Assembly: GCA_965202585.1 (NCBI GenBank)
Contig: OZ241834.1
Location: 34,348,001-34,412,000 of the forward strand
From: Thalia democratica
Taxonomy: Eukaryota
DNA length: 64,000 nt
Direction: 5' to 3'
In this document: one piece after another, positions 449 through 61,391 of the stretch
Layout: the number at the start of each line of letters is the position of its first letter
Numbering within the stretch: position 1 is the first letter of the stretch
The notes under the pieces: model-generated
The model's database searches: none
Told to the model about the DNA's origin: nothing
What the model saw: only the letters and a program-made list of their open reading frames with translations
Made by a program: the position numbers and the translations under genes

Positions 449-2865
<2,417 letters not shown>

Positions 2866-4242: not shown

Positions 4243-5135
4243 ACATTATTAATGTTTTATTACTTCCTCCATAGTACTCAATTTTTACTCAGTGTTTGAA
4301 ATGTACATTTGTATCTTCTAATCTAACTTAGAAATTTTTTGAGCAAAATAAAAATTTTCATTATATTTTTGAGCTTGATGGATCTAAGCGAAAAGCAAAA
4401 ACATCAACATGCAGTACAATCCTAGAAGTTTGGCGAAAATAAAGAACTCTTCAGTTAGCAACTAAATGATTCACAGTCAAAGTATATAACTTAATTAAAA
4501 ATAAAAGTTGTTCTGGAGCTTAAAGTTATTATATTATTTATTTGATAAACTTAAGTTTAAGATACTAAATAAATTTTAACCAAAATAACAACACTTAATT
4601 TAATAGTTATAAAAGTAATCATGTGTTAATAAGTTTAAATAGAACGAATGACTGTAGTGAATGTTTATATTTTGTTTTCTTAAAACCAATATTAAAATTA
4701 TATCAGAATTAGCTATTTGGTAAAGAAAATATTGGGATCTATTGAGTACGCGTTTTAGGGTTTTGTTATAAATGCGTTCTCATAAGGAAGATTTAAATAA
4801 AATCAAATTATGTAAAACGACATAAAATTTTATTTAACATTTTTTCAACAAACTATTTTTAGACAAGTATCGTAATTACACTAAAATATCGTTGTTAATT
4901 TTACTTTTATTAATTTTTGAACAAAAAGAAATATTAAAAACTATAAAAAGTACTGCAAATTACAACTCTTACCGGCTCATTTATTGAAAAAATTAAACTA
5001 TTTTATTTTGCATTTAACTTTGTATAATAATATTAAATGTTAACGCAGGTTCGTATTCTAATAACTTTTTTTACGACTAAAAAATGATAAAAGTTTACTC
5101 AAGATCTTAGCTGAAAAAAGCTAAGTCAGAAAATT

Positions 5136-5733: not shown

Positions 5734-7369
5734 TCACCAACGATCATTCCACACCAAATAAATAACAGAACCATTTTGAATGTTGTAGTCAGACAAAGCC
5801 CTTGCATATTCCAATTTTTCTCCAGCCCAAATCAGATGATGCTTGCGTGGTGGGATACCTGAAAATATTCAAATATTGAAAGTAATAATACATTTAAGCT
5901 TTTTTTTTCACAAATTAGTTAAAGTATATATTAAATTTTTTATACTACTTCAACATTTACAAAAAGTTAAAAATATTACATTAAGCTCAATATTTTAACC
6001 TCAATTATGTAATATTAAGGTATTTTCTTAATGTATGTTAAAAGTATGAGTACTGTTCAATTCATAATACACATTAAAGCTATTATATTTCCAAATTTCG
6101 TAGATTTAAAACTACTTTTAGATGGGACATTTTGAACATATTTACCAAGTTCTTGATATATTATCTTAGAAATTGTCTTAAATCTACAAGCTTAACAAAC
6201 CTTCTTTGTCTTGAATCATGGCTTTGACATTTTCAATGGTGTCAGAAGCTTCAACTTCCAATGTGATGGTTTTACCAGTTACAATTTTCACAAATATTTG
6301 CATTTTTATCTATTGATAAGTTTTTAGTAAAGTCTAACTTATAGTTAAAAAATTGCATAAAACCTTGTAAACTATTTTTAAAAACAACATATACGAGCTT
6401 TAAAATGTTTCGTAAAGTTTTAATATACTACAAAAAATATAACGAAAATACTTAAGAGCATTGACAATTTAATACATGAATTAGTGTTTTGTTAAAAAAA
6501 AAACAATTAAAATTAAAAGAGTCATTTTCTAGTACAAAAATTATTATTACAAAGCAATTGTTGTTTTTAGCATTGTAATCTATTTACACATTTTTTATTC
6601 TATAATGTATTTAATGTTTTTGAACTAAAATAATTTGTTATCCATTGCTATCCTTGTTTAAAAAACTTGTGCTAATGTTTCTGACTTAAGTCAAATATTT
6701 ATTTTTAATTTAATATCTATTTAGGAAAAACAAACTAATATGTAGTTTATTTTCATTCGATGCTAAATTTTCAATGCATTAAAAAGTGAGCATTGGGTAG
6801 TTATTTAAAAAAAACAAACTTATACTACACAATTGTTTTTTCAATAATATTTAGTTATTTGTTTGCTTATATTTTTAATATAACATACTAACTGCAGTAA
6901 GAGTTGATCCATTCTCAACTCCATAATCAGACAAAGTAGAAGGCCTTGAATTTCTTTCATCTTTCAATTCATCTTCACTAAAAAACAAGCGTACTTGATC
7001 TAACGAGTGACCTGAGTTTACAAATAATAACATGAATTTTGTATAAAAATAAGAAAATAGGCCTTGTTTATCTTGGCGAAAAAGTTTTTACAAAAAAATA
7101 AACTTTTATAACCTTTACTTAAGCAACGTAAAAAGTAACAACTAAGTAGTTTATTTAAAAATAAACAATAAATCCTATACTAGTTAAAGACTTTTGATGT
7201 ACATTTCATTGTTTAACATTTTAGTTATATAATTTTGCCAGTTAATTTATTTAAAAAAAGTTTTACTACCTTTTTCTTTAGCTTTATTTCTAAGCTCTTC
7301 AATGCTGTCGGAAGCTTCAACTTCCAATGTGATGGTTTCACCAGAAAAAGTTTTCACAAATATTTGCAT
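5734..7369 (-). CDS. Di-ubiquitin-like protein, minus copy 1 (intact, 150 aa)
   Basis: Exons 7369-7270, 7011-6893, 6309-6201, 5858-5734, all GT-AG, phases 1/0/1. [150 protein letters not shown]. Confidence 0.82.
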
Positions 7370-8721
7370 TTTTATTTTGAAAAGCTGTTAAGATATTTGT
7401 ATTTATAAATCGGTGTCCCACAAAATGCTACCAAGTAAATCTAGTTTTTCTATTTTATTTTTAAGCAAAAATGAATATAAGAAATCAACTGATATTTACT
7501 TATAAAATAAAATGACAACCAAAACACTTGTTTTACTTTCCATACAACTGTTCCTATAAAACTTAATTTTAAATACCAAAATCACTTATTTATTAAACCT
7601 TTTGTCTGTGGTATAAGCTTATCTACAATAATAGTAAATTAAAAGTAAATTTATGTTCAACTTTTTTAAACTAAAAAAGTTTTATTATGGAGCAACATAA
7701 TCTTGACCTTTTAAATAAGTTTGTTTTTATGTCTGTTCAACAGAAATTGTGAAATGTATAATAATCATTGACTTTACTGGAGTTTTAATTTTATACTTTT
7801 GTGTTCATAAGTCACATTTTAAGTTTAAAAGCAATAAAAATCTATGTTTGAATTTGTGCTGTACTTAGTTTAAAAATATTTAAGTACCAGCTTATGATAT
7901 GAAAACAATAAATTTGAACTATCTAAGAAAAACTGGTTACGCTAAAAAAGTAGTACTATCAATTTTTAAAATAAAACATTTTCTATGTAATATACTTTTA
8001 TATATTTGAAGATTGTTGACTGTATTGTTTTCATCAGCTATCAAATAGCTTTTAAAATCTGCTAATTAATAAAAACGGTTCTATAATTTTATCTTTTTGA
8101 AGAACTTAGGTAATGCGCTTACTTATCAATTTTAATATAAATAAGCATATAAAGTATCGTGCTTGATATAAACATTTGATAAACAAAAGTAAAAAATTCC
8201 TGACACAAAATTAAAACTAATATAATACTTTTATGATCAGTTTCATACTTTTGCCCGTACTGTGGCTAAATTTTCTATAAATTTATTGAGATCAAAAAAG
8301 TCTTCATAGTTCAAATTACAAATCTCCTTAACTTAAAATTTTATTTATAACTTCAGAAACTTACTATTTTATATTCGTAAAATTGTTGTGCTAGTTAGTT
8401 GTCATTTTGATAAACTACTTTATAAGTTATACAACTGTTCTTTTTAATGTTAATTTTCAATGTTTTTTTTTTAAGTCTTTAACAAGCCAGACTTACCTAA
8501 AATAAATTCGCGGGCTGTATAAATGAAAAATAAATTGTACAATAAATATTTCATAACTATTAAATAAAACTTTTTATTTTTTAAAGGTAGAAAACCTTCT
8601 TTAAGCTAAAATCTTTAATAAAAATATCATTTTAAAATAACTATTGTATTACAAAAACTGAATTAATAGCAAAAGATTGCTTTTAATATACTGTTTTTGT
8701 TTCTTTTGTATAACATTATTC

Positions 8722-10217: not shown

Positions 10218-11904
10218 TCAACCACGAAGTCTCAACACCAAATAAAAAACAGAGCTATTTTGGATGTTGTAGTCAGACAGAATCATTCCATCTTCCTATA
10301 GCTTTCTAACAATAAACAGAACTTGCTGGTCTGCTGGGATACCTGAAAAAATATTCAAATATTGAAAGTAGTATTACATTTCAGCTATTTTTTATTATTT
10401 TCATAAAATTAATTAATTTGAATATTTATTTTAATTTTTATGCTGTTTTAATATTTACATTTGTTATTAACTATACATTTAGCTCTAATTTTATACCTCA
10501 ATTATATACTATTATTGTATTTTATTTTCATGTATGTAAAAAGTATAGATAAGTGTTCGATTCATAATAAACATTGAAGCTATAATTCCAAATTTAGTAG
10601 ACTTAAGTTTACTAATAGATTGAACAGCTTAAATATTTTTACCAAGTTCTTAAATATATCATCTTAAAAGTTGTATATCTACAAGCTAAACAAACCTTCT
10701 TTTTCTTGGATCATTGCTTTGATATCTCCACCGGTATCAGAACCCTCAATTTCCAATGGGATGGTTTTACCAGTCAATGTTTTCACAAATATTCGAATTT
10801 TCTATATATATATAAGATTTTAGTAAAGTTTAACATATAGTTTTAAACTTGCATAAAAAAACTTTTAATAAGAATACAAAAAATAAAATAAACAAGCTTT
10901 TAAAATGTTTTGAAAATTTTTAAACTTACTAAAGATAGTTAATGTACTATAAATTTTATGACGAAAAACAATGTAGAAGAGCTTTGACAACTTAAAACGT
11001 GAACTTCTGTTTTATTTAAAATGTATAATTTTTTAACGAAGAAATTCAAAATAAAACATTTTAAAAATTAAAAGTCATATCATAGTACAAAAATTTCCGA
11101 TACAAATAAATTTAGTTGTTTTTATCATTGTTAGCTATCTACACATTTTGCATTTTAATGTATTAAATGTTTCCATATTAAAACAACTTGTTAACCAAGC
11201 TATCCTTGTATTAAACTTGTATTAATATTTCTGACTATAGTCAAATATTAATATTTAATTTAATACCTGTTTGTATAACTAAATTGTTTTTTATTCGATG
11301 CTAAATTTTCAATGCATTAAGTATTAAGTATTTATCTGAAAAAAACCAAACAAACATATACTACACAATTTTTTTAAAATAATATTTAATTATTTATTTG
11401 CTTATATTTTTTATATAGAGTACTAACTGTAGTAAGAGCTGATCCATTCTCAACTCCATAATCAGACAATGTAGAAGGCCTTGAATTTCTTTCATCTTTC
11501 AATTCATCTTCACCAAAAAACAAGCGTACCTGATCTAACGAGTGACCTAAGTTTTCAATTAATAACATGAATTTTGTTCAAAAATAAGAAGTTAGGCTAA
11601 TTTATCTTGGCAAAAAAGTGTTCACAAAAATATAAACTCAACTTTCATAAACTTTACTTAAGCAACGTAAAAAGTAACAATTAAGTAGTTTACTTAAAAA
11701 TAAACAATAAATCCTATACTAGTTAAAGACTTTTGATGTACAACTGTTTAACATTTCAGTTATATCATTTTGCCAGTTAATTTATTTTAAAAAAGTTTTA
11801 CTACCTTTTTCTTTAGCTTTATTTCTAAGCTCTTCAATGGTGTCAGAAGCTTCAACTTCTAATGTGATGGTTTCACCAGAAAAAGTTTTCACAAAAATTT
11901 GCAT
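10218..11904 (-). pseudogene. Di-ubiquitin-like gene, minus copy 2, premature stop in domain 2
   Basis: Exons 11904-11805, 11546-11428, 10801-10696, 10342-10218. Exon 3 starts AAA ATT CGA (K-I-R; the domain-2 Met is replaced by Ile). In-frame TAG at 10296-10298 (Leu50 position). The residual frame ends LVLRLRG-TGA. Confidence 0.8.
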
Positions 11905-16481: not shown

Positions 16482-16779
16482 AAAATGAAATTAATTGTGA
16501 TGTCACTGACGGGTCACAACTTCACTTTGGAAGTTGAAGTTTCTAATACAGTTAAAGATATCAAAGATAAACTGAAAGAGAAAATGGGTAACTCTAACTT
16601 AAAAAATTGTGAAAATTTTTAAGATAATAAATTGAAGTAAATCTTTAATATTATTAGGGTGGTCGTCAGTGTACATTAAATATTTGATGATTTCTGGTGG
16701 TGTAAAATTACTTGACGACAAAACACTGTCTTACTATTATATACAGAACAACTCTAATCTTTATGTGGTGTTTAGGTAG
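16482..16779 (+). CDS. Orphan second UBL domain of the plus-strand subfamily (74 aa from its own ATG)
   Basis: Exons 16482(ATG 16485)-16587 and 16658-16779, with a phase-1 intron at the Gly35 position. [74 protein letters not shown]. Exons 1-2 seen in the paralogues are missing beyond the 15793 junction. Expression unknown. Confidence 0.55.
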
Positions 16780-20203: not shown

Positions 20204-21860
20204 TCAACCAAAAAGGCTCAACACCGAAAAAATAACAGAACCATTTTGAATGTTGTAATCAGACAAAGCCCTTTCATTTTCCAATTTTTCTCCAGCCCAG
20301 ATCAGATGATGCTGGTATGGTGGGATACCTGAAAAATATTCAAATACTGAATGTAATAATACATTTAAGCTTTTTCTATCACAAAATTAATTAATTTATT
20401 TATTTATTTGGTTTTTTATACTATTTCAACATTTACATTAAGTTATGTAATTTACATTAAGCTCAATATTTTAACCTCAATTATGTAACATAATGTTATT
20501 TTTTTAATGTGTGTGAAAAGTATAAGTACTGTTCAATTCATAATAAATATTAAAGCTATTATATTTTCGAATTAAGTAGACTTCTTACGTCTACTAATAG
20601 ATGGAACAGTTTGAGTATATTTACCAAATTCTTAAAATATTATCTTAAAAGTTGTCATAAATCTACAAGTTATACAAACCTTCTTTGTCTTGGATCTTGG
20701 CTTTGACATTTTTAATGGTGTCAGAAGCTTCAACTTCCAATGTGATGGTTTCACCAGTTATCATTGTCACAAATATTTGCATTTTTCTCTATTGATAAGT
20801 TTTTAGTAAAGTTCAAAAATTATAGTTCTTATAGTTCAAAAATTGCATAAAAAACTTAAACCACTATATTAATAAGAATAAAAACAAAAAAAACATATAC
20901 GAGCTTTAAAAGGTTTTGTAAATTTTTGATTTTACTAAAAAATTAATTTACTTCGAAATTTATAACGAAAATAATATAAAAGAGCTTTGACAACTTATTA
21001 CATGAATTAGTGTTTTGTTTAAAAAAAAACAATTAAAAATTATTATTACGGAGCAATTGTTGTTTTTAACATTGTAAGCTATTTACACATTTTTATTTTT
21101 TAATGTATTTAATGTTTTTGAACTAAAATAATTTGTATCCATAGCTATCCTTGTTTAAAAAACTTTTGCTAATTTTTCTGACTTTAGTCAAATATTTATT
21201 TTTAATTTAATACCTATTTAGAAAAAAAACTAATATGTAGTGTATTTTGAATGCATTAAAAAGTGAGTATTGGATTGTTATTTAAAAAGATAAAACAAAT
21301 TTATACTACGCAAAAATTTTTTTTATAATATTTAGTTATTTATTTGCTTATATTTTTAATATAGAATACTAACTGCAGTAAGAGTTGATCCATTCTCAAC
21401 TCCATGATCAGATAAAGTAGAAGGTTTTGAATTTCTTTCGTCTTTCAATTCACTTTCACCAAAAAACAAGCGTACCTGATGTAACGGATGACCTGAGTTT
21501 TCAAATGATAACATGAATTTTGTATAAAAATAAGAAAATAGGTTTTGTTTTTTATCTTGGCGAAAAATTTTTTACAAAAAATACACTAAACTTTCATAAA
21601 CTTCACTTAAGCAACTTATTAAGTAACAATTAAGTAATTTACTCAAAAAAAAATAAAGCATAAATCCTATATTAGTTAAAGACATTTTGATGTACAACTG
21701 TTTAAAACTTCAGTGCAACACTTATTTTGTTAGTTAATTTATTTAAAAAAGTTTCACTACCTTTTTCTTTAGCTTTATTTATAAGATCTTCAATGCTGTC
21801 AGAAACTTCAACTTCCAATGTGATGGTTTTACCAGTCAAAGTTTTCACAAAAATTTGCAT
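20204..21860 (-). CDS. Di-ubiquitin-like protein, minus copy 3 (intact, 150 aa)
   Basis: Exons 21860-21761, 21492-21374, 20788-20680, 20328-20204. [150 protein letters not shown]. Confidence 0.82.
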
Positions 21861-22661
21861 TTTTATTTTGAAAAGCTGTTAAGATATTTGTATTTATAAA
21901 ATGGTGTCCCACAAAATTCTACCAAGTAAATCTAGTTTTTCTATTTTATTTTTTGCAAAAATGAATATAAGAAATCAACTAATATTTACTTTTAAAATAA
22001 AACTGCAACCAATACACTTGTAAAACTTTTCATAGAACTGTTCCTATAAAACTTAACTTTTAAATACCCAAAAGGACTTATTTGTTAAACCTATTGTCAG
22101 TAGTATAAATTTATTTACAATAATTTCAAATTAAATGTAAATTTATGTTTAACTTTTTTACACTAAAAAGTTTTATTATGGAGCAAGATAATCTTGACCT
22201 TTTAAATAAGTCAGTTTTTATGTCTGTTCAACAGAAATTGTGAAATGTATTTTAATCATTGACTTTACTGGTGTTTTAATTTTATACTTTTGTGTTCATA
22301 AGTAACATTTTGAGTTTAAAAACAAAAAAAAATGTTTGAAAATATTTTAGTTTAAAAATATTTAAGAACCAGCTTATGATATGAAAATAATAAATTTGAA
22401 TCATCTAAAAAAATAGTTACGCTAAAAAATTAGTATTATGAACTTAAAAAATAAAACATTTACTGTGTAATATATTTTCATATAATTAAAGATTGTTGGA
22501 TATACTGTTGAAATTTAGCTACTGTAAGCTTTTAAAACGTTCTAACTTACAGAAATGATTCTATATATTTATTTTTGAAGAGCTTAGATAACTTTAATAT
22601 AAATAAGCGGATAAACTATTGTACTTGACTTGTCCTGGATAAGACGTTAAAATGTATCCAT

Positions 22662-22708
22662 GGTGTGCGACTCGATAACCGAAAGGTTTTTCGTGCACCA
22701 GTTCCTAG
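22662..22708. promoter_or_regulatory. Conserved GC-rich upstream element (GACTCGATAACCGAAAGGTTTTTCGTGCACCAGGTCCTAG-like), candidate regulatory site
   Basis: Eight copies: 22662, 33349, 53526, 62165, 63589, and reverse-complement at 15838, 41628, 55396. Seven lie ~600-820 bp upstream of a UBL-domain ATG in the same gene-relative orientation; the 63589 copy is a more distal duplicate. Function is inferred only. Confidence 0.4.
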
Positions 22709-25474
22709 AACTAAATATTTTGAGCGTATTTTATGTCGTTCAATAAACTATAAGATATAAACATAAGAAAAAATAACTTACTGACATAAATGTAAAACTA
22801 ATGTCTAAAAATTCTAAAACTTATATAAAACTTATGATAAGTTTCATAATTTTGCTTGTACTGTAGTTTATTTTATATAAACTTATCGATATCATTGATT
22901 TTTTATAATTCAATCTAAAACTTTTTCTTTAAGTATAAGTTTTACTCATAACTGCGGAAACCAACTACTTTATGTTCGTAACAGTTTTGTGCTAACTGGT
23001 CGTAATTTTAAAAAACTTTTTCATAAATTGTACGACTGTTCTCTGTTTTATTTTCAAAATAGCAAGTACTTAATTTGAAAATATTAAAACTAAAATACAA
23101 TTATTTGTGGTTGAAAAAAAATACTTAAAAGTCTTCAGTTTAAAAAGTTTTGCTGAAAAAAACTTTTTTTTACAATTGTTAAAAAAAAACTTCAGTCCTT
23201 AACTCTAGACTTTACAACGATAATCGTTAAAATTTAGCTTTTATGTAAATAAAACGGTTTTGCTTTTTAATTTGCATTTAAAAAATCTTAATTTAGTTTT
23301 AAAACAGATTAAAACTTGTGTCCTTCTAACCATAAGTTTATTTTTTAAATATTGGGTTATAAAAAATACGAAACACGCAGGTATGAAAAAACATACAAAA
23401 GTTATTTTGTAAATTTTAAGAATGCAATCAAACATTTTCAAAATATAAAGCTGTTTTTACTTCTATTCTATGCATAATTGTTTTCTAGTAACATTTTAAG
23501 AATCACCTAGATCATCTTTTGTCTGGTTTTTATAATTTATTTTAAAATATGTATAATTCAATTAAAACTGGGTTGTTTCTACTAGAACAGCGATTCTAAC
23601 TTGACTATTTTACAAGTTGATTTATTACTGAAACTTATTGTTTATACGCATTGATGAGAGAAATTAGTAATGTTTAAAAATTTTTTAGTTTGTTAAGATT
23701 ATCAATAACTGATAAAAATCTGTCTACTAAATTGTGTATTAAGTAAGTACTTTTTAGATACCAATAAAATATTTTAATTTCTGTTTTAGTATAAACAGTA
23801 CTAAAACTTAAAAAGAATTTTATAAAACAAAATTTAAACAAAAGTTGCTTTTGCTCGTAAGTTCTTAAGTAGAATATTACACTAGTTTTAAATATTTTTT
23901 GAAATTTACATTGATATATAACTAAAATACATTTAAAAAAGTTTCATGCTAAAAGCTAATAGCAGTAATTTTACTCCAAGAGTAAACATTTAGAAGTATT
24001 ATTTTTTTATAAATTGTACATTATGTAATTTAAAAATCTAAAAAACTAAAGTTTGGACTAGGTGATAACTAGTTTTTATTTATTACACTTATTCATAAAA
24101 ACTTTACTTTTAAAGAAATATTAAGTAAAAAAAAATATTAAAATATTCTATGTCATCTAAATGTTAATATACGACTTTACAGTTATATATTTTTGTCGGT
24201 ATATGCTTATTTTTTTCAAATACTTTAATTAACTCCAACAATTCTATTACTTAATCCTAAAAAATTTACTAAGTACATTATTAAAATTATAAATACTGTT
24301 GCACCTATAAAGTATGGAACATTTGTTTTTAGTAGATACGTTTCAAAAGTTAAGGTTTAAAATAAAGTTAATGACTGCTAATTTGCTAATATGTACTTGT
24401 AAAATTCTTTTTTTTTTTAATAAATTAAATACAATATCTTTCACTTCTAAGTTCTACTGTATCAGAAAAATATTATTTTCTTGATTGTTTTTATGCATTT
24501 TAATTTTTCTGTTCTTTTGCATTTAAACTTTTAATAAAAGATTTTTAAGTAAGCTATTAAAAGTATAAAGGTTATTATGTAAAAACTTAAAACATGAATT
24601 CAAATACAAAAGTATTTGAGTAAAAATTATACAATCCATTATTGATACATCTATGACATAGAGTAATGAGTAGACATTTAAACTAACTAATAGAAAATAA
24701 ATATAAGCTTAGATATCAATAAATGTAAATAGTGATGTAAAGTAAATTTAAAAAATTTCCTAAAGTCTAGTTATCATAGATTTTGAAATACTAAATACTT
24801 AAATCAAAAAGGTATTTTTGACATCTAAATACTTGTAGTGACTAGTAATGAAATAACCAATTTTAATCTACACCATCTTTCGAAATTTTGAATAAAACTG
24901 TCATTACAGCTTCTTTAAGTTAAAAAAGTACTAATAAAAAAAACAAGAGGGTCATATGCTAAGTATAAACCTGCAGTAAAAACATCATGTATTTTACCTA
25001 TTATTAACTATTAACCTGTAAAATCTGTTGAAATCATTTTTTAAATTTTAATTTTAATGAAAACATGTATACACCTACTTTATTCTATGCTTCTATTCTT
25101 TCATTACAGTAATTATTTTTTTACAGAACCCAGTTGAAGTGTGTTGATTCGTTAACACACAGAAACATATGTTGGTACAATAAAGGAAGATCTTTGTATA
25201 ATTTATTTTTATATATATTCCAGTGAACTTGTTTTAGTAGGATCTTTTGTAAGCAAACGGTTAAATTTATATTTTGAAAAGTGATAACAAATAAATACTA
25301 TTTTTTTGAAAAAGAAATTTATAATGTTTTTTCGAGTGAAAAGTAAAACAAAGCAAAACAGTTTAGTTAAATAATAATTCGAAACATAACTTAGTATTAT
25401 AGCAGTAGAAACAAAATTGCATTGATAAAAATAGGTACCGCACACTGAGCACTTTAATAAATGTGGAAATTTAT

Positions 25475-27298
25475 TCAAGCACTAAGTCTCAACACCAAAT
25501 AAATAACAGAACCATTCTGGATGTTGTGGTCAGACAAAGTCCCTCCATCTTCCAATTGGTTTCCATCAAAGATCAAACGTTGCTTGTTCGGTGGGATACC
25601 TAAAAATATACTAATTAACAAAGTATTGAAATGTTTAAAGTAATATTATAATTCAGCGTTTTATCATCATTTTCACACAATTAGTTAGTTTGAGTACTTA
25701 TTCAATTTTTTATATATAATTTTGACATTTACATCTAGTTATTGACTTTAGATTAAGCTCAAAATTTATGTAACTAATTATGTAATATCGTGGTATTTTA
25801 TTTTTGTTTTATGTTTCAAAATATACACGTGCCTTATGTAGAGTATACCGTGAGTTTTTAAACATTAAAATGAATTTTGTAGAAATATTAAGAAATATAA
25901 GTACTGCTCAATTCAATATAAACAATAAAGCAGTTAGATTTTCAATATTAGTGGACTCTAGTCTACTAATAGATTAGACAGTTTACATATATTACCAAGT
26001 TCTTAAGTATATTATCTTAAAAGTTGTCATAAATCTACAAGTTATACAAACCTTCTTTGTCTTGGATCTTTAATCTGACACTTTTAATTGTGTCAGAAGC
26101 TTCAACTTCAAATGGGATGGTTTTACCAGTCAATGTTTTCACAAATATTTGCATTTTTCTCTATTGATAAATTTTTAGTGAAAACTAACTTATAGTTTAA
26201 AGCTTACTTAAAACTTAAGCTATCTTTTTGTATAAAAATGAATTCATATACACGTAAAAGAGCTTTAAAAAAAGTTTAGTAAGTTTTTAAACTTACTAAC
26301 AAAAGTTAACAGACTATAGATTTTATTAAGAAAATAATATAGAAAAAAGCTTTGAAAAAAACTCATAAAAAAGTGTTTTGTCTAAAATGCTCGTTTTTAA
26401 AACTGTAAAACTTATAGAAAAACAATTGAAAAGTCATTTAGTAATACAAAAATGTCCAATACAAAGTAATTAACTGTTTTTAACATAGTTAATCGTATAC
26501 ACATTTTTATCTTTTAACAGGTTAATTTTTTCTGAATTAAAATAGTTTGTAATTCAAAACTATCTTTGTATGAAACACTTTTTAAAACTACCATTTATTT
26601 ATGACAAATTAACGACTATAGTAAGAAATTTATTTTTAATTCAATACCTGTTATGAAAATAAATAACTAGCAAGAAAATATTTTTATTCGATGTTAAATT
26701 TTTAATGCTTTAAATTGAGCGTTAAGTAGTTATTTATAAAATATTTTAGCAAAAAAAATTATGCTAAATTTAGGAATTTATTACTTATATTTTTGGAGAA
26801 TACTAACTGTAGTAAGAGTTGATTCATTCCGGACTCCATAATCAGACAAAGTAAAAGGTCTTGATTTTCTTACATATTTCAATTCATTTGCACCAAAATA
26901 CACACGTTCCTGATGTAGTGGATACCCTGATTTTTCAAACATTAACATAAGCTTTGTAGAAAAGTAAGAAACTAGGCTATGTATAAGTAAAATTTTATCT
27001 GGGCGGAAATTATAACTTTTCTGTTACCATTCACTTCACTTAAGCAACGTATTAAGTAACAGTTAAGTAGCTTACTAGAATAAAAAGCATAAATCCTATA
27101 CTAGTTAAAGGAATTTAGATGTACAACTGTTTAAAACTTAGTAAAACTTAGTAAAACACTTATCTTGCCAGTTAATTTATTAAAATAACTTTCACTACCT
27201 TTTTCTTTACCTCTACTTCTAAGCTCTTCAATGCTGTCGGAAGCTTCAACTTCCAATGTGATGGTTTCACCAGTAAAAGTTTTCACAAAAATTTGCAT
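25475..27298 (-). CDS. Di-ubiquitin-like protein, minus copy 4 (intact, 150 aa)
   Basis: Exons 27298-27199, 26926-26808, 26160-26052, 25599-25475. [150 protein letters not shown]. Confidence 0.82.
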
Positions 27299-28782
27299 TT
27301 TTATTTTTAAAAGCTGTAAAGATATTTGTATTTATAAATTGGTGCCCGCAAAATGCTACCAAGTAAAATTAGTTTTTCTATTTTATTTGTAAGCAAAAGT
27401 GAATATAAGAAATCAACTAATATTTAAAATAAAACTGCAACCAATACACTAGTATTGCTTTTCATATAACTATTCCTATACAACTTAGTTTTGATATACC
27501 AAAAGCATTTATTTGTTAGACCTATTGTCAGTAGTATAAATTTATCTACAATAATATTAAATTAATAGTAAATTTATGTTCAACATTTTAACATAATCTT
27601 GACCTTTTAAATAAGTTTAGATGTATTTTTCATAAGAAATTATGAATTGTTAATAAGTATTGACTTTACTGGAGATTTAATTTTATACTATTGTTTTCAT
27701 AAGTAACATTTTGAGTTTAAAAACAATAAAAAAATATATTTGAATTTGTTTTGTACTAAGCTAAAAATATTTAAGTACCAGCTTATGATATGAAAACAAT
27801 AAATATGATTTAACTAAGAAAAACTAGTTACGCTAAAAAAGTAGTACATATTATTAACTTAAGAAATAAAAAAATTACGATGTAATATCTATATATATTT
27901 TTTGATGGTTGACTGTATTGTTTTCATTCAGCTATCAAATAGCTTTCAAAATGTGCTAACTAATAGAAACGGTTCTATAGTTTTTTTTTGGAGAACTAAG
28001 GTAATGCGCTTACTTATCATTTTTAATATAAATAAGCATATAAAGTATCGTGCTTGATATAGAAATTTGATAAATAAAAGTAAAGTATTCACTGACACAA
28101 AATTAAAACTAAAATAAAACTTTTATGATCAGTTTCATACTTTTGCCCGTACTGTGGCTAATTTCTTTGATGAGTTTATTGAGATAAAAAAAGTCTTCAC
28201 AGTTCAAAATACTGTTTTTCCTTTATTTTAAATTATATTTATAACTGCAGAAGCTTACTATTTTATATTCGTAAAATTGTTGTGCTAATTAGTTGATATT
28301 TTGGTAAACTACTTTATAAGTTATACAACTGTTCTTTGTTTTATGTTTTTTGCTTTAAAAAGTCTAGTTCATTTTAAAAAGCTCCAGCAAAAAGTTATTT
28401 ATTAAATAGAGATTATCAACGTCATAAGTGATCATCGCTACTTGTTTATTTACTTTTGTTTAAGAAGTTAATAATAATTGTCATCTAATACCAAAAGTTG
28501 ATTTGCTTACAATAACTGTGGTTCATTCTAACCGCAGCATTTTCTATTTAGATAACATTTTTTTATTGTGGACTAAACATTTTTTTATAGTAACATTTTG
28601 ACAAAGCATTTTAAAAGTAATTTACTTTAATCAAAGCATTAGAAAAAAAAGGTAAAAAGTTTCATAAATAGCTAGTTTGTATAGTTATTATTGTTTTAAG
28701 TTTATAGTAATAACAAAGTTAAAAATTTTATTCAAAATTTTATAAGTCCAAAGTTTTACCGGTGTATATATCAAAGCTTAAC

Positions 28783-28946
28783 AAAAAAACAGGGCTAAGA
28801 CAAGAGCTGACCACCCTGGCGGACTTACGGCTACATCGCCTATCAATTTAGACCGGTGGACCAATGGTGCCGCCGGCCAATGCATCCTGGGTTCACGTCC
28901 CGAATTAAGGCATTGCTGTCTTACAGACACGTCTGATCTCAATGGG
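28783..28946 (-). mobile_element. Truncated paralogue of the SINE-like element at 13465-13735
   Basis: Same body (CCACCCTGGCGG..CATCGCCTATCAATTTAG..GTTCACGTCCCGAATT) in the duplicated block, without the tRNA-like head. Confidence 0.6.
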
Positions 28947-30878
28947 TTACGGTAAAACGGTAAGACGCAGTATCAAACCGCTAACCTATGAATAGCTTAT
29001 TTTAAATCTTTATTGAAGGTATATAAATGTTATAAAAAGTAAAAACTATATGCTAATTTGTTTTCATTTACATTTAGGTTAAACTTTACACTTAGATAAT
29101 GTATTGTGACGCAACAACGGCGTCCTGAGGCTCGTCAGGTTCAGGGGCGGACATCAGTGCTTGCAGGAAAAGCATTACTGTCCTCAGGGTCATAATGGCA
29201 GCCCTGTAATAAGATATAATAGTTGATGTGGCTAACCAAAATTATTTTTTTTTTTATTGGCGAAAAAGTTTTTACAAAAAAATAACCTTATCTTTCCTAA
29301 ACTTTACTTAAGCAACGTATTAAGTAACAATTAAGTAACTTACAAAAAAATAAAGCATAAATTTAATATTAGTAAAAGACATTTTGATGAACAAGTGTTT
29401 AAAACTTCAGTTATCTAACTATGCTAACAACACTCATCTTTCCAGATAGTTTAAACATAATAACTCCTAAAAACTAGTTAGCTTTTACCTCATAGAATAG
29501 CTTTTTTTATATAACTTTTTAAAAATGTGTAGCTGTAATAAAGGAGTATTACAAAATTAATCAAATTTGGTAGTTCGTCAACTTTTAGTTTTTTGTCGTA
29601 ACTTACGAGTTAAGCTTAAATTTATTTAATAAACGATATACAAACTTTAAGAGCTAAATTTGTTATTAAATATAGTCTTAAAATATAAACTTTGATTTTA
29701 ATTAAACTTTTGCCCTTTAAATAAAATTTGTAGTGAGTGTATTAATTTATTCCGATATAACTCTTCAAATGTATAAGAATCGGTTAATAGAATGATAAAC
29801 AAATATGTGTAGCTTTTTATGCAAAATAAAAGCTTTCCAAGACTGATAAAATACCTTATAAGGTCTCACAAGCAAAACAATAAAATTTTTAGACAAATGT
29901 TACATAAAGTTTAATTAAGATTCTTGATAAGCAATTAACATACTAAGTTAAAATTAAGGACACTGAATTAATAATTGACGTCGAAGTTTTAATTTTATTT
30001 GTTAACTTTACCAATAAGTATAAACTTGAAGTTATATCAATTTTTGAAGTAAAATAATGATTCATAATCTTATTAGTTTATTAAGCGGTTATAAGGACAA
30101 ATAAAAGATTAAAAAAAATATTTTACTTTATTCGCTATGCTGATCAAATTTCATGCAAACTCAAATTTAACAATGATTAAAAAATATCAAATTGAAGTTA
30201 TTGAATTTGTTCCAGGTTAACATTTTCAGGTATTTTAGTTACAACATTTTTACTTACTTTTATCTAATATTGATTTTGTAATCTAAAAAAAATTAAACTT
30301 TCTGCATATTGACTCATTTCTTAGTTATATTTTATAATTATTTTAAAATAATTAATCGACAACTCATGAATGACTACCCTTGTAATACTATGTAAACTTT
30401 TCAGGTACTTATAGAAAACTCACTTAGTTAAAACAATGGTCTTCAAATTCGATACGTGTTAAAGCAAAAAATATTTTATAATAAATTTAACAACAGACAT
30501 TGATATTGCTTGTGAATAAACAGCTTAAACTAAAAATTTGTCAAACTGTTTTATAAATTTATCCTACCGTATTCATTCAAACATTTTTTAAATACTAACA
30601 GCAAATAAAGTTATATTCTCAGTTACTTTACATTTTTGACAGTTTAGTATTGTTTAATTAAGTATACTAATTTAGTATTATTTCACCGATTAAGATAAAA
30701 ATAAACACTATCTTTTTAAAAAAATGTTTAATGTATTTTCGAGTGAAAAAACAAAACATATCAGTTTAGTTCAACAAAAAATTTGAAATATAACATAGTA
30801 TCATAGCAGTAAAAACAAAATTGCATTGGTAAATATAGGTATCGCATACTGAGCATTGTAATAAGTGTGGTGATTTAT

Positions 30879-32548
30879 TCAACAACCAAGTATCATCACC
30901 AAATAAATAACAGAACTATTCTGGATGTTGTAGTCAGACAAAATCCTTCCATCTTCCTATAGTTTTCTAACAATAAACAGAACTTGCTGGTCTGCTGGGA
31001 TACCTGAATAAATATTCAAATATTGAAAGCAATATTACATTTCGGCCTTTTTTATTATTTTCACAAAATTAATTAATTTGAATAATTATTTTAATTTTTA
31101 TACTGCTTTAACATTTACATTTAGTTATTAACTGTAAATTAAACTCAAATATTTAACCTCAATTATATACTGTTATTGTATTTTATTTTCGTGTATGTAA
31201 AAAGTATAAGTACTGTTCAATTCATAATAAACATTAAAGCTATACATCCGAATTTAGTAGACATAAGTCTACTAATAGATTGAACAGCTTAAATATTTTT
31301 ACCAAGTTCTTGAATATATTATCTTAAAAGTTGTATATCTACAAGCTAAACAAACCTTCTTTTTCTTGGATCATTGCTTTGATATCTCCACCGGTATCAG
31401 AAGCTTCAATTTCCAATGGGATGGTTTTACCAGTCAATGTTTTCACAAATATTCTAATTTTTCTCTATATATAAGTTTTTAGTAAAGTTTAACATATAGT
31501 TTTAAACTTGCAGAAAAAATTTCAATGTGAATATAAAAAATAACATAAACGAGCTTTTAAAATGTTTTGTAATAATTAAAGATAATTAATGTACTGTAAA
31601 TTTTATGACGAAAAACAATATAGAAGAGCTTTGACAACTTAACACATGAACTTCTGCTTTGTTTATAATAAATTTTGTAACGAAGAAATTTAAAATAAAA
31701 CAATTTAAAAATTAAAAGTCATATCATAGTACAAAAATTTCCAATACAAATAAATTTAGTTTTTTTAAACATTATAAGCTATCTACACATTTTGCATTTT
31801 AATGTATTTAATGTTTCCTTATTAAAACAACTTGTTGTCCAAGCTATCCTTGTATTAGACATGTATTAGTGTTCTGACTATAGTCAAATATTTATTTTTT
31901 ATTTAATATTTCGAAAATATATAACTAATAATGTTTTTTTTTACTCGATGCTAAATTTTCAATGCATTAAGAATTAAGTATTTATCTGAAAAGACCAAAC
32001 AAACTTATACTACACAATTTTTTTTCAATAATTTTTAGTAACGTATTTGCCCATATTTATAATACAGAATACTAACTATAGTAATAGTTGATCCATTCTT
32101 AATTCCATAATCAAACAAAGTAGAAGGCCTTGAATTTCTTTCATCTTTCAATTCGTTTTCACCAAAAAACAAGCGTGACTGATCTACTGGGTGACCTGAG
32201 TTTTCAAATAATAACATGAATTTTGTATAAAAGTAAGAAATTAGTCTAATTTATCTTGGCGAAAAAGTTTTTACAAAAAAATAAATTTTTATAAACTTTA
32301 CTTAAGCAACGTAAAAAGTAACAATTAAGTAATTTACTTAAAAATAAACAATAAATCCTATACTAGTTAAAGACTTTTGATGTACAACTGTTTAACATTT
32401 CAGTTATATCATTTTGCCAGTTAATTTATTTAAAAGAAGTTTTACTACCTTTTTCTTTAGCTTTATTTCTAAGATCTTCAATGCTGTCGGAAGCTTCAAC
32501 TTCCAATGTGATGGTTTCACCAGAAAACGTTTTCACAAAAATTTGCAT
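30879..32548 (-). pseudogene. Di-ubiquitin-like gene, minus copy 5, premature stop in domain 2
   Basis: Exons 32548-32449, 32195-32077, 31464-31356, 31003-30879. Exon 3 starts AGA AAA ATT AGA (no Met). Same in-frame TAG (30957-30959) as copy 2. Confidence 0.8.
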
Positions 32549-35893: not shown

Positions 35894-35993
35894 ATGCAAA
35901 TTTTTGTGAAAACATTGACTGGTAAAACCTTCACATTGGAAGTTGAAGCTTCTGACACCATTGTGGATCTTATAAATAAAGCTAAAGAAAAAG
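35894..35993 (+). pseudogene. Isolated exon 1 (UBL1 N-half) whose partner exon 2 is absent
   Basis: [34 protein letters not shown]|gtatgt, 100 nt like every other exon 1. No exon-2 homologue was found before 36367. Confidence 0.6.
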
Positions 35994-36375
35994 GTATGTT
36001 TAACTTTTCATAACACAATAACTGGTAAGATAAGTGTTGTTAGTGTTTACTAAGGCTGTTTTCCAAAAAAAGCGAGCTTTATAATTTAAAAACAGTTGCA
36101 TTTAAAACAAGTTAAATTAAATTATTCGACTAGTATAAGATTTATGCTTCATTTTTTCAGTAGACAATTTAGTTTTGACTTTTAGCTTAGCTCCAGCGAA
36201 ACTTTACTAATTTTTTCTAAATAGATGTTTGCCAAATTTGTAAAAGTATGCTTATATATTGATTAATTTATAATTTTTAATTAGTCATTTTTATTAGTTA
36301 TTATAGTTTATTTTACTTTTCAAAAAATAAGACTAAGTTTGAGTTAAATTCAAACAAATTTTCAAGGAGAATAAA

Positions 36376-41123: not shown

Positions 41124-42553
41124 ATGCAAATATGTGTGAAAACTTTGACTGGTGAAACTATCAAATTGGAAGTTGAAGCTTCTGACACCACTGAGAATTT
41201 CATAAATAAAGCTAAAGAAAAAGGTAATAAAAATGTTTGCTCGATAGAATGACAATTAGATTTTGGACTTGAATTGCTTTAGTTTTCTAAATTAAAACTA
41301 ATAAAAAACTTCATACAACTAAGATGTTTGTCTTTTACTGAAAACATTTTTACCAAGTAGTAATTACATTGTATTCAAATATAAAATATTTACTTCGTAC
41401 TTTCAATAATCTATACTATTCATGTTTAAAATTTGAAAACTCAGGGTGTCAATTATATGAAGAATTTGTGACTTTTGGTCAACATAAATTGAAATATGGA
41501 AGAAGTTCAAGACCTTTTACTCTGTCTGATTATGGAGTTCAAAATGGATCAACTCTTTCTGAGGTGAGTATTTTACATGCACTTTTCTCAACACAAGTAA
41601 AAAAATTGGCTCAAAAGGGTTTGGTACAAGGACCTGGTTCACGAAAAGTCCTTTTGGTTATCGAGCCAAAAGCTAAATGTCTAGTCGAGGAGAAGTTATT
41701 TTTAAGATTCTACATTTTGTTTAATATAAACTGGTTTAGACTTGATTAGTAACTTAAAACATTATGTTTTGACATGCACTAACTTTTGAGTACTAAACAT
41801 TGTTTATAATTTTTGTTGTCTTATATGTGTGCTGACTATCAAAGTTATTGTCTTGAAAATAAAACTAAGCACAGTCACCTCCTTATTAAATATAGGGATA
41901 GTCTTCATCAGTTTTTATTTTAAGTATTATAGAAAATTTTTATATTAAAAACCTGTTTGATTCAGAACAACTACTTGAATTACTTTAGACTTAAAACAGG
42001 TTTTTGACATTTAAAAATTTCAGCTTGAATTATTTTCAATTTATAAACTAAAAGTAGAAATAAAATATTACATAATTTTGTACTTTGCCTATAAAAGCTT
42101 TTATTTCGTAAGTTCTCATTAAAAGCTAAAGAACAATAAATTTTTTGTTTAGAAAAATAAAACAACTTAACTTTTATAAGTTAAAGAGTTATTTACGTTA
42201 AAAACTAGGATTAACTATTTGTATTCTATTGAGTTTTTGATTATGACTTAAATTTGAATAAAATCTTATTAACAGAAAATGAAATTAATTGTGATGACAC
42301 TGACGGGTCACAACTTCACTTTGGAAGTTGAAGTTTCTTATACAGTTAAAGATATCAAAGATAAACTGGAAGAGAAAATGGGTAACTCTAACTAAAGATA
42401 ACAGATTGAAGTAAATCTCTAACATTATTAGGGTGGTCGTCAGTGTACATTAAATATTTGATGATTTCTGGTGTTGTAAAATTACTTGACGACAAAACAC
42501 TGTCTTACTATTATATACAGAACAACTCTAATCTTTATGTGGTGTTTAGATAA
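41124..42553 (+). CDS. Di-ubiquitin-like protein, plus copy A (intact, 148 aa)
   Basis: Exons 41124-41223, 41445-41563 (donor GAG|gtgagt), 42276-42381, 42432-42553. [148 protein letters not shown]. Confidence 0.8.
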
Positions 42554-45970: not shown

Positions 45971-47660
45971 TCAACCATAAAGGCTCAACACCGAAAAAAT
46001 AACAGAACCATTTTGGATGTTGTAATCAGACAAAGCCCTTTCATATTGCATTTTGTCTCCAGCCCAAATCAGATGATGCTGGTATGGTGGGATACCTGAA
46101 AAATATTCAAATACTGAATGTAATAATACATTTAAGCTTTTTCTTTCAAAAAATTAATTTATTTATTTATTTGTTTGGTTTTTTATACTATTTCAACATT
46201 TACATTAAGTTATATAATTTACATTAAGCTCAATATTTTAACCTCAATTATGTAACATAATGTTATTTTTTTAATGTGTGTGAAAAGTATAAGTACTGTT
46301 CAATTCATAATAAATATTAAAGCTATTACATTTTCGAATTAAGTTGACTTCTTAAGTCTACTAATAGATGGAACAGTTTGAGTATATTTACCAAATTCTT
46401 AGAATATTATCTTAAAAGTTGTCATAAATCTACAAGTTATACAAACCTTCTTTGTCTTGGATCTTTGCTTTGACATTTTTAATAGTGTCAGAAGCTTCAA
46501 CTTCCAATGTGATGGTTTCACCAGTTATCATTGTCACATATATTTGCATTTTTCTCTATTGATAAGTTTTTAGTAAAGTTCAAAAATTATAGTTCTTATA
46601 GTTCAAAAATTGCATAAAAAACTTAAACCACTATATTAATAAGAATAAAAACAAAAAAAAAAAAACATTTACGAGCTTTAAAAGGTTTTGTAAATTTTTA
46701 ATCTTACTAGAAAATTAATATACTTGGAAATTTATAACGCAAATAATATAGAAGAGCTTTGACAACTTAATACATAAATTAGTGTTTTGTTTAAAAAAAA
46801 AACAATTAAAAATGATTAAATAGTCATTTTCTAGTAGAAAAATTATTAATACAAAGAAATTTAGTTGTTTTAACATTGTAAGCTATTTACACATTTTATT
46901 TTTTAATGTATTTAATGTTTTTGAACTAAAATAATTTACATCCATAGCTATCCTTGTTTAAAAAACTTTTGCTAATGTTTCTGACTTTAGTCAAATATTT
47001 ATTTTTAATTTAATACCTATTTAGAAAAAAAAACTAATATGTAGTGTATTTTGAATGCATTAAAAAGTGAGTATTGGATTGTTATTTAAAAAGATAAAAC
47101 AAATTTATACTACGCAAAAATTTTTTTTACAATATTTAGTTATTTCTTTGCTTATATTTTTAATATAGAATACTAACTGCAGTAAGAGTTGATCCATTCT
47201 CAACTCCATGATCAGATAAAGTAGAAGGTTTTGAATTTCTTTCGTCTTTCAATTCACTTTCACCAAAAAACAAGCGTACCTGATGTAACGGATGACCTGA
47301 GTTTTCAAATGATAACATGAATTTTGTATAAAAATAAGAAAATAGGCTTTGTTTTTTATCTTGGCGAAAAAACTTTTACAAAAAATAAACTCAACTTTCA
47401 TAAACTTCACTTAAGCAACTTATTAAGTAACAATTAAGTAATTTACTCAAAAATAAAGCATAAATCCTATATTAGTTAAAGACATTTTGATGTACAACTG
47501 TTTAAAACTTCAGTGCAACACTTATTTTGTCAGTTAATTTATTTAAAAAAGTTTCACTACCTTTTTCTTTAGCTTTATTTATAAGATCTTCAATGCTGTC
47601 AGAAGCTTCAACTTCCAATGTGATGGTTTTACCAGTCAAAGTTTTCACAAAAATTTGCAT
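45971..47660 (-). CDS. Di-ubiquitin-like protein, minus copy 6 (intact, 150 aa)
   Basis: Exons 47660-47561, 47296-47178, 46555-46447, 46095-45971. Closest to copy 3. Domain 2: [75 protein letters not shown]. Confidence 0.82.
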
Positions 47661-51085: not shown

Positions 51086-52768
51086 TCAAGCACTAAGTCT
51101 CAACACCAAATAAATAAGAGAACCATTCTGGATGTTGTGGTCAGACAAAGTCCTTTCATCTTCCAATTGCTTTCCAGCATAGAGTAAACGTTGCTCGCAT
51201 TGTGGGTAACCTGAAAAAAAATAGAAAGTAACATTATATTTCAAATATTTTTATTATTTTAACAAAGTAAATTAATCTAAGTTTTCTTTTAATTAAATAT
51301 TATTTCAACATTAACATTTAGTTATAAACTATATATTTAACTCAAGTTTTTAACCTCAATTATGTGTTATTATTGTATTTTATTTTCATGTATGTAAAAA
51401 GTATAAGTACTGTTCTATTCGTAATAAAAATTAAAACTATTATATTTCCAAATTTAGTAGACTTTTTAGTAGTCTACTAATTGATAGGACAGTTTAAGTA
51501 AGTTTATTAAATTCTTAATATGTTATCTTAAAAGTTGTCATAAATCTACAAGTTATACAAACCTTCTATGTCTTCGATCTTAGCTTTGACATTTTCAATG
51601 GTGTCAGAAGCTTCAACTTCTAATGGGATGGTTTTACCAGTCAATGTTTTCACAAAAATTTGCATCTTTCTCTATTGATAAGTTTTTAGTAAAGTCTAAC
51701 TTATAGTTTAAAATATGTATAAAAAACCTTAAACTATTTATTCAATAAGGATACAAAAAAAAATTATATACGAGCTTTAAAAGGTTTTGTAAATTTTTAA
51801 TCTTATTAAAAAAATTAATATACTATATATTTTATAACGAAAATAATATAAGAGCTTTGACAACTTAATACATGAATTAGTATTTTGTTTAAAATAATAA
51901 AAGAAATAAAAAAATTAAAAGTTATTTCATAATACTAAAATTTCCAATAAGAAGAAATTTAGTTGTTTTTAACATTGTTAGCTATCTACGCATTTTTACT
52001 TTTTAATGTGTTTAATATTTATAAACTAAAATAATTTGTTATCCAAGCTATCCTTATATTAAAAATTTTAAAGACTACCACTTTTTTTAAGTGTCGACTA
52101 TAGTCAATCATTTATTTTTAATTTAATACCTATTTAAGAAAAAAAAAAATAATATGTACTATATTTTCATTCAATGCATTAAAGAGTGAGCATTGGGTAG
52201 CTATTTAAAAAGATAAAACAAACTTATATTACGCAAAAATTTTTTTTTTAATATTTAGTTATTTAATTGCTCATATTTTTAATACAGAATACTAACTGCA
52301 GTAAGAGTTGATCCATTCTCAACTCCATAATCAGAAAAAGTAGAAGGTTTTGAATTTTTTTCATCTTTCAATTCATTTTCACCAAAAAACAAGCGTACCT
52401 GATCTAACGGTTGACCTGAGTTTTCAAATAATAACATGAATTTTGTATAAAAATAAGAAGTTAGGCTAATTTATCTTGGCGAAAAAGTTTTTACAAAAAA
52501 ATAAACTTTTATAAACTTTACTTAAGCAACTTAAAAAGTAACAATTCAGTAATTTACTTAAAAATAAACAGTAAATCCTATACTAGTTAAAGACTTTTGG
52601 TGTACAACTGTTTAACATTTCAGTTATATCATTTTGCCAGTTAATTTGTTTAAAAAAAGTTTCACAACCTTTTTCTTTAGCTTTATTTCTAAGCTCTTCA
52701 ATGCTGTCGGAAGCTTCAACTTCCAATGTGATGGTTTCACCAGAAAAAGTTTTCACAAAAATTTGCAT
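51086..52768 (-). CDS. Di-ubiquitin-like protein, minus copy 7 (intact, 150 aa)
   Basis: Exons 52768-52669, 52415-52297, 51671-51563, 51210-51086. [150 protein letters not shown]. Confidence 0.82.

Positions 52769-59718: not shown

Positions 59719-61391
<1,673 letters not shown>

Follow-up and report, generated by a model that had tools for sequence, protein, structure and literature searches.

A tandem array of ubiquitin-derived genes without a Gly-Gly tail in Thalia democratica

Introduction

Ubiquitin is among the most conserved proteins of eukaryotes and its power lies in its C-terminal Gly-Gly tail; activation by the E1 enzyme, conjugation and release by deubiquitinases (DUBs) all require it. 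What, then, is a locus that reads as two ubiquitin-like halves and carries the tail in neither of them? This question is raised by positions 5734–7369 (minus strand) of a 64,000-nucleotide stretch of Thalia democratica DNA, here called the window, which corresponds to contig C10:34348001–34412000 of an 802-Mb assembly and was examined with 110 kb of flanking DNA (174 kb in total). A sequence-only reading had described the products of this locus and of its neighbors as uncleavable, unconjugatable diubiquitin mimics. We find that the locus belongs to an array in a genome where dozens of ubiquitin-derived units have been amplified and all have given the tail up. On balance we favor the view that it represents a family of genes derived from ubiquitin, specific to this lineage, amplified in tandem and lacking Gly-Gly, whose reading frames have been kept by selection and whose products may act non-covalently or as ubiquitin acceptors.

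Results

The locus is one member of a tandem array

The window is AT-rich (22–27% GC in 2-kb windows) and its genes are spliced; a scan for open reading frames (ORFs) found no long one in the window. A tblastn search with the 150-aa protein of the spliced model returned, within the window, eight minus-strand copies (starting at 7369, 11904, 21860, 27298, 32548, 47660, 52768 and 61391), four plus-strand relatives and, at the left edge, a polyubiquitin gene. The ubiquitin-like array runs at least 80 kb further past the window, with two more minus-strand copies (m9, m10), two on the plus strand (p4, p5) and seven single-unit genes (q1–q7). Altogether the 174 kb hold at least 12 pairs, 12 of which were modelled, each pair consisting of an N-type and a C-type ubiquitin-fold unit with two exons per unit. 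The N-type unit shares ~55% identity with ubiquitin and carries 5 inserted residues; its defining in-frame indels, a gain of five codons and a loss of one, are retained by every copy. The C-type unit is 63–79% identical to ubiquitin over codons 1–70. In each unit the intron lies at the phase-1 site of Gly35, matching the repeats of the adjoining polyubiquitin gene, and the unit-to-unit spacing of 586–650 nt is conserved across copies.

The copy at 5734–7369, m1, has exons at 7369–7270, 7011–6893, 6309–6201 and 5858–5734, which when joined encode 150 aa in two ubiquitin-like halves. Its parts are, in the direction of reading:

7385..7407, minus: upstream element, TATAAATA (7407–7400) and an acceptor-like TTAACAG (CAG 7387–7385) 15 nt 5' of the ATG; conserved in all copies
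7270..7369, minus: exon 1, N-type unit, from Met1 to the first base of the Gly34 codon; donor GTAGTA
6893..7011, minus: exon 2, N-type unit, ending GSTLTA; compared with ubiquitin, five codons (NSRPS) are inserted and one is missing before Gly35
6875..6892, minus: putative intron-2 donor GTTAGT (6892–6887); unspliced, it reads Val-Ser-Met-Leu-Tyr-stop (TAA 6877–6875), followed by AATAAA/ATTAAA and a GU-rich block
6310..6344, minus: element before the second unit, a conserved 35–45 nt with a TATA-like CTATAAG (6344–6338), TTTACTAAAAAC and AG (6311–6310); homologous to the exon-1 promoter and 5' leader
6201..6309, minus: exon 3, linker codons ATA AAA, ATG at 6303–6301 and the first half of the C-type unit; donor GTTTGT
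5734..5858, minus: exon 4, second half of the C-type unit, ending LVWNDRW; TGA (5736–5734) overlaps AATAAA (5734–5729)

The predicted exon 2–exon 3 junction of the fused model reads ACTGCA joined to ATAAAAATG. TTAACAG or TTTACAG stands 15 nt 5' of the first ATG in every copy, and the 12 nt GTTAGTATTCTA at the putative intron-2 donor are conserved also in paralogs on chromosome 8 (contig C8).

No unit can expose Gly-Gly

Both Gly-Gly motifs are gone, and this holds for the spliced and the read-through gene models alike: RGG is found neither at the end of nor inside any unit, be it in one of the 12 pairs, among the C8 paralogs or in the distal single-unit genes. The details given by the sequence-only reading are borne out to a large extent. 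TGA stands at codon 76 in seven of the eight minus-strand copies, copy m2 reads CGT GGT TGA and copy m8 has a 5-codon C-terminal extension. All listed C-termini are present: the minus strand supplies NDRW, SLFG, RLSA, SLYG and RLFV, the plus-strand relatives VVFR and SYKG. Every copy has Asn at the Lys63 position in each of its two units, and at the Lys48 position most carry a residue other than Lys (among the eight C-units, E, D or N in five and K in three). The count of eight complete minus-strand copies must be qualified: eight copies exist, and in two of them (m2 and m5) the second unit is dead, with no ATG, a TAG and Ile23 replaced by Gly.

With no Gly-Gly to expose at the C-terminus of either unit, established enzymology rules out activation by E1 and conjugation. 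The units are thus not conjugatable ubiquitin-like modifiers, which carry a terminal or exposable Gly-Gly or Gly, nor do they form a polyubiquitin precursor, as they lie 586–650 nt apart and the LRLRGG junction is absent. Of the earlier description, "unconjugatable" therefore stands in either gene model, while "diubiquitin" depends on a predicted splice. The C-units mostly retain Lys6, Lys11, Lys27, Lys29 and Lys33. Furthermore, the Leu8/Ile44/Val70 patch stays hydrophobic, with His68 changed to Tyr or Phe in C-units and to Thr in N-units. A ubiquitin core, TGA in place of the Gly76 codon and retained candidate acceptor lysines are the features of a UBB+1-like protein, which here may be ubiquitylated.

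Because all stops of the family are TGA, an alternative genetic code was considered for the in-frame TAG codons. It was ruled out because the copies with TAG have also lost the ATG and core residues, and because the polyubiquitin gene ends in TAA.

The predicted fold is that of ubiquitin, the modelled geometry not that of linear diubiquitin

The products belong to the ubiquitin family by sequence profile and by predicted fold. Pfam family PF00240 matches the fused model with E = 5e-35 (in two stretches), the N-unit alone with 1e-13 and the divergent plus-strand second unit with 2e-8. AlphaFold2 (AF2) models the fused protein as two beta-grasp domains, with a predicted local distance difference test (pLDDT) of 84.9 and a predicted template modelling score (pTM) of 0.59.

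Readers specific for Met1-linked chains and OTULIN-type DUBs contact the Arg72–Gly76 tail. In the fused model residues 70–76 are replaced by 1–2 residues, so that this tail (R72-L73-R74-G75-G76) is absent and the modelled linker is ~5 residues shorter than that of Met1-diubiquitin. Comparison of the AF2 model with solved structures of linear diubiquitin by Foldseek gave a template modelling score (TM) of ~0.5 and a root-mean-square deviation (rmsd) of 6.5–12 Å: the domains match, their arrangement does not, and superposition succeeds domain by domain only. As modelled, the fused protein is a poor mimic of a linear chain, which weakens the earlier proposal that these proteins serve as linear-diubiquitin decoys.

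Reading frames are kept by selection

Codon-model likelihoods were computed for the 12 pairs on trees from exon and intron alignments, with introns taken as a fair neutral yardstick. Among the 12 copies, ~134 (N) and ~164 (C) exonic substitutions are accompanied by 0 exonic indels, whereas the introns show 141 gap events per ~1400 substitutions. After correction for homopolymers, ~10 frameshifts would be expected per unit, and the probability of seeing none is 3–6e-5. Likewise, 0 and 1 nonsense changes were observed against 9.4 and 11.5 expected with intron base composition as the mutation target. For the N-type unit omega is 0.42 (2dlnL = 16.2, p = 6e-5 vs omega = 1) among the copies and 0.33–0.6 between C8 and C10. 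C-type omega between C8 and C10 copies is 0.25–0.58, with Fisher p of 0.087 and 0.039 for the two pairs involving m7 and ≤0.014 for the other ten, and 0.20 (p = 0.006) between the two C8 copies. Because omega lies below 1 between C8 and C10 at a synonymous divergence (dS) of ~0.5–1.9, both unit types have been protein-coding for a long time; the recent C10 copies are under relaxed constraint and several of their second units are dead. Positive selection was not detected in either unit (M2a vs M1a non-significant; no significant class with omega > 1).

Two further observations concern the mode of divergence. The dS of 0.5–1.9 exceeds the mismatch of introns and flanks between C8 and C10 paralogs (0.17–0.3); perhaps exons mutate faster, having GC-richer sites in an AT-driven genome, or else the non-coding parts are homogenized or constrained. 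Gene conversion between copies is likely, because the trees of N- and C-units differ.

Decaying debris, one fused protein or two separate products

Several results weigh against our view of a selected family. Among recent C10 copies the C-type omega is 0.79, not different from 1, so that part of the array may be drifting; in the C-unit, buried residues are about as variable as exposed ones; the C-unit is dead in 4 of the 12 modelled pairs, by one event shared by m2, m5 and m10 and by another in p5; and the non-covalent or acceptor function is one that we infer by analogy. The omega of 0.79 and the dead second units, together with similar exon and intron mismatch rates in some pairs and the failure of protein searches to find an annotated homologue, are what would be expected if the array were non-functional debris, that is, young and decaying duplicated polyubiquitin fragments that resemble genes. 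We regard this as very unlikely: the frames are open far beyond neutral expectation, with P ~1e-4 or lower per unit for indels and for stops each, the N-unit evolves under constraint, the N-type in-frame indels are retained in all copies, and the family is old, with omega of 0.2–0.6 between C8 and C10.

How many proteins a copy makes is a separate matter. The model built on the sequence-only reading has a four-exon gene in which cis-splicing from GTTAGT at codon 70 to the AG before the second ATG yields a 150-aa uncleavable di-ubiquitin, a decoy for readers and DUBs of Met1-diubiquitin. The elements of its splice-encoded linker (IK, RK or K) do exist, as GTTAGT follows codon 69 and an in-frame AG lies 3–6 nt before the second start codon in all copies; the splice itself is a prediction. 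The flanking codons vary, yet GTTAGT itself does not change in 11 of 12 pairs or in the C8 paralogs; it also resembles weak donors of this genome (GTTTGT, GTTAAT, GTAGTA). In every case the acceptor AG lies in frame, 3 or 6 nt 5' of the second start codon, including in a C8 row of three units (N-N-C) and in the divergent p2 and p3. The conserved unit spacing also favors fusion, as does a frame that stays open in two lineages that lost the second ATG, although each of these lineages has a further lethal defect, a TAG in one and a broken donor in the other. Conservation is poor in the part of "intron 2" that precedes the TATA-like box, unlike at a real promoter. AF2 is confident about the N-domain in the fused context (pLDDT 75–90) and poor for it alone (56.5), a contrast that is weak evidence because the alignments were shallow (6 sequences). 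Against fusion, a processed retrocopy or cDNA junction was not found in the genome itself or in JGI metagenome and metatranscriptome contigs, where there were only chance hits unrelated to ubiquitin-like proteins. Against the decoy, the 1–2 linker residues in place of residues 70–76, the missing LRLRGG tail, the poor superposition on linear diubiquitin and the replacement of His68 by Thr in the N-unit and by Tyr or Phe in the C-unit all count; in this precise form we consider the model improbable. The principal competitor has two genes or cistrons per copy, a 78-aa N-type mono-ubiquitin-like protein (mono-UBL) ending VSILY with its own poly(A) signal, and a 75-aa C-type mono-UBL whose expression relies on a TATA-like promoter of its own or on spliced-leader trans-splicing at the AG that precedes its ATG. 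Unspliced, the first unit reads Val-Ser-Ile/Met-Leu-Tyr-stop, which completes the fifth strand, again without Gly-Gly. This read-through, V-S-I-L-(Y/F/I)-stop, recurs in most C10 copies, in the C8 paralogs and on one Tara Oceans contig, and the Leu codon of the tail varies only synonymously (TTA, CTA, CTC, CTG). AATAAA and a GU/U-rich block follow within ~60 nt, with a C8–C10 mismatch of 0.18 vs 0.25–0.42 for exon 2, and homology to the promoter and leader of exon 1 extends over the last 45 nt ahead of the second ATG, with TATAAG kept at −43. A start codon, a stop, a TATA-like box and AATAAA are thus present for each unit. Stand-alone N-type and other two-exon mono-UBL genes without Gly-Gly occur in the cluster (q1–q7), as does a lone second unit (p0), and in m2, m5 and m10 an intact first unit stands beside a dead second one. 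What speaks against two products is that GTTAGT is conserved at the nucleotide level with zero synonymous changes, that the linker is in frame in all copies, that read-through in p2 and p3 gives an unrelated tail of ~60 aa, and that the TATA-like box has no conserved promoter elements upstream of it. When conservation along intron 2 was profiled in sliding windows and set against that of the promoter, the result favored none of the gene models. We give the two-gene model a real chance, if one short of even. Judged from these signals, mainly fused and mainly separate products appear equally probable, neither quite reaching an even chance, with the remainder going to both being made or to neither being expressed. 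The AG before the second unit may also be a spliced-leader acceptor, in which case cis-splicing, polyadenylation and trans-splicing would compete.

Some 70–90 nt after N-type exon 2 (6800–6892 and equivalents) read GTTAGTATTCTAT.TTAAAAA.ATAAGCAAATAAATAA..TTTTGCGTAGT; the stretch recurs on the minus strand of a C8 piece (L031:5960–6042 and 4810–4889), and its C8–C10 conservation exceeds that of the coding exon. It looks like a module of stop, AATAAA and GU-rich poly(A) signal, or else a strong intronic element. Searches for sequencing runs found three of unrecorded kind (X1–X3) and none recorded as RNA. One of them (X3) contained 7 of 12 sampled words from exon 4 and its 3' flank and was not listed for the whole 1.9-kb locus, which would fit an exon-only or 3'-tag RNA source. 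A scan for promoters and terminators of bacterial type was set aside as irrelevant for this genome.

Other copies and the neighboring polyubiquitin gene

The remaining copies in the window are as follows:

10218..11904, minus: m2, N-unit intact; C-unit with ATT for ATG and TAG at codon 50, ending LRLRG-TGA
20204..21860, minus: m3, ending SLFG-stop
25475..27298, minus: m4, ending RLSA-stop
30879..32548, minus: m5, C-unit with ATT for ATG and TAG at codon 50, ending ILGC-stop
45971..47660, minus: m6, ending SLYG-stop; near-duplicate of m3
51086..52768, minus: m7, ending RLSA-stop; Lys48 retained
59719..61391, minus: m8, 5-codon C-terminal extension, ending RRLFV-stop
16482–16779, plus: p0, partial duplicate starting inside the spacer, with only the divergent second unit (MKLIVM)
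35894–36687, plus: p1, N-type exon 1 followed directly by the second unit, without N-type exon 2; ending SYKG-stop
41124..42553, plus: p2, N-type unit, then a very divergent second unit (MKLIVM), ending YVVFR-stop
54885–56336, plus: p3, resembling p2

The dead second unit common to m2 (10218–10801), m5 (30879–31461) and m10 (C10:34422798–34423358) is marked by ATT for ATG, TAG at codon 50 and Ile23Gly/Glu24Gly. Past the TAG its frame is still open to the usual TGA, and the first units of all three copies are intact.

Some copies are recent. The two members of the m3/m6 pair are nearly identical, with an intron divergence of 0.02–0.05, and m1 and m9, 64.5 kb apart, differ at 0–0.7% of intron positions and at 3 exonic bases. 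A segmental duplication of ~25.8 kb (20204–32548 vs 45971–~58000) carried several copies together.

The polyubiquitin gene at the left edge contributes one feature to the window:

468..2865, plus: last two polyubiquitin repeats, ending LRLRGG-Leu-TAA

In full the gene comprises 9 repeats and starts 11.5 kb upstream of the window (C10:34336528–34348000 plus window 468–2865). Every repeat is split by a phase-1 intron of 0.5–3.3 kb within the Gly35 codon, which is unusual for a polyubiquitin gene, and the intron donors are weak (GTTTGT, GTTAAT, GTTATT).

Relatives elsewhere

The C8 paralogs have the same architecture, lack Gly-Gly and end in IIMLKCF-stop. At C8:8387724–8390553 (L031:3724–6553, minus) the units stand in the order N-N-C, with spacers of ~600–650 nt, GTTAGT donors and in-frame AG acceptors; the row could be a tri-UBL gene or a three-gene operon. 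Another N-C pair and a broken unit of the N-type lie on the piece L032. Beyond the window, the genes q1–q7 at C10:34467083–34488615 (window coordinates 119083–140615) are two-exon, single-unit ubiquitin-like genes. Their first exon is almost unchanged ubiquitin, their second exons are very divergent and all lack Gly-Gly, with ends that include LRLANRCCHQET-stop, FVCREIFV-stop and GRIFRKK-stop.

A search with the whole protein was swamped by polyubiquitin and, restricted to residues 22–75, found nothing; among 5.8 billion sequences, no protein of 82–262 aa shared words with the N-unit. A search with the exon-2 ORF matched only a 57-aa ORF on Tara Oceans contigs. The only public relatives found are Tara Oceans metagenome contigs (L028–L030), with ~86% DNA identity to m6 over exon 2, spacer and next exon. 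In one of them (L028) the same sequence stands at both ends and the spacer is joined to an N-type exon 1, so that the contig may be a chimera, assembled across the exon start that both have in common, or else a tandem N-type array.

The same genome has histone arrays on C2, C7, C8, C9 and C10 (e.g. C7:14674300–14683400), with hundreds of units of ~7–8 kb that hold H1-H3-H4-H2A-H2B, and many H3 variants. Its H2A protein is identical to ORFs on many marine contigs of Tara Oceans, as fits a planktonic animal of the sea.

Discussion

If the locus is a gene of a selected family, as we favor, its history might have run as follows. The Gly76 codon would have become a stop in the common ancestor of the C-type units, and the N-type unit would end at a VSILY-stop or, if spliced, at the donor in its codon 70. 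Products without Gly-Gly cannot undergo E1 activation, conjugation or DUB release. Selection holds the frames open while the protein sequence changes quickly. By analogy to known systems, the proteins may act without covalent attachment, as ubiquitin-fold modules that bind ubiquitin-binding proteins. Alternatively, they may be conjugation-dead acceptors that are ubiquitylated on the retained Lys6, Lys11, Lys27, Lys29 and Lys33, as is UBB+1. A decoy function is speculative.

A bolder scheme can be drawn for fused products. The Val70 codon would have been recruited as a donor and the 5' leader of the next gene as an acceptor, giving rigid, DUB-proof concatemers (N-C on C10, N-N-C on C8) that serve as "polyubiquitin surrogates", that is, as decoys or scaffolds; polyadenylation or trans-splicing, as opposed to cis-splicing, would set whether a mono- or a poly-UBL is made. 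We hold this to be a long shot.

For the family that we favor, the array is a natural experiment in which the ubiquitin fold is used non-covalently or to cap chains. Should the predicted splice prove true, it would further show how a di- or tri-domain protein can arise from tandem genes through a codon turned donor. Such a family would escape standard annotation, and in the databases searched its public relatives are Tara Oceans fragments only.

Comparison with known systems

The best match in both sequence and structure is Met1-linked diubiquitin, with 57–59% identity, and a genuine polyubiquitin gene adjoins the array. The difference lies at the junction: LRLRGG-M is absent here, at most 1–2 linker residues take its place and the domains superpose with an rmsd of 6.5–12 Å. 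Without this junction, DUB cleavage and recognition of R72–G76 are impossible.

Hub1/UBL5 is a free, small UBL that ends in Tyr-Tyr, lacks Gly-Gly and acts by non-covalent binding. The read-through N-unit, which ends in Leu-Tyr, is similar in description only; Hub1 is a single conserved gene, in contrast to the fast-evolving array. If the splice is real, the fused protein also resembles ISG15 and FAT10, which have two ubiquitin-fold domains in ~150–165 aa (TM ~0.5). Unlike the present family, which has no Gly-Gly and derives directly from ubiquitin, these two end in Gly-Gly, are conjugated through E1 enzymes of their own, have a longer hinge and share ~22% identity with the fused model.

In UBB+1, a human frameshift variant of ubiquitin, loss of Gly76 blocks E1 activation, conjugation and DUB release while internal lysines remain ubiquitylatable (PMC8032880). 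Gly76 is lost in both cases, to a 19-aa extension in UBB+1 and to a stop in the C-units, or a short extension in m8. However, UBB+1 stems from a transcript error and is disease-linked, whereas the genes described here are germ-line encoded, amplified and under selection, and have mostly lost the main acceptors Lys48 and Lys63.

The tandem UBLs of OASL are reported to act towards RIG-I as a non-covalent mimic of polyubiquitin (PMC6019448). OASL (PDB 7sbi) was among the structural matches and likewise has two ubiquitin-fold domains without a conjugatable Gly-Gly. Its UBLs are appended to an OAS-like enzyme domain and are ~25% identical to the fused model; the present family has no other domain, its units are 55–80% identical to ubiquitin and their fusion is only predicted.

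UbKEKS, a ubiquitin variant encoded by the "pseudogene" UBBP4, stands for diverged copies that had been dismissed as pseudogenes and are reported to be expressed and functional (PMC7066184). The array likewise consists of diverged ubiquitin copies. UbKEKS is said to retain Gly-Gly and to be conjugated, which the present copies cannot be.

In summary, non-conjugatable proteins of the ubiquitin fold are already known. The novelty lies in a tandem expansion that is large, under selection and derived directly from ubiquitin, and possibly in a mechanism of gene fusion by splicing, in a lineage without an annotated relative.

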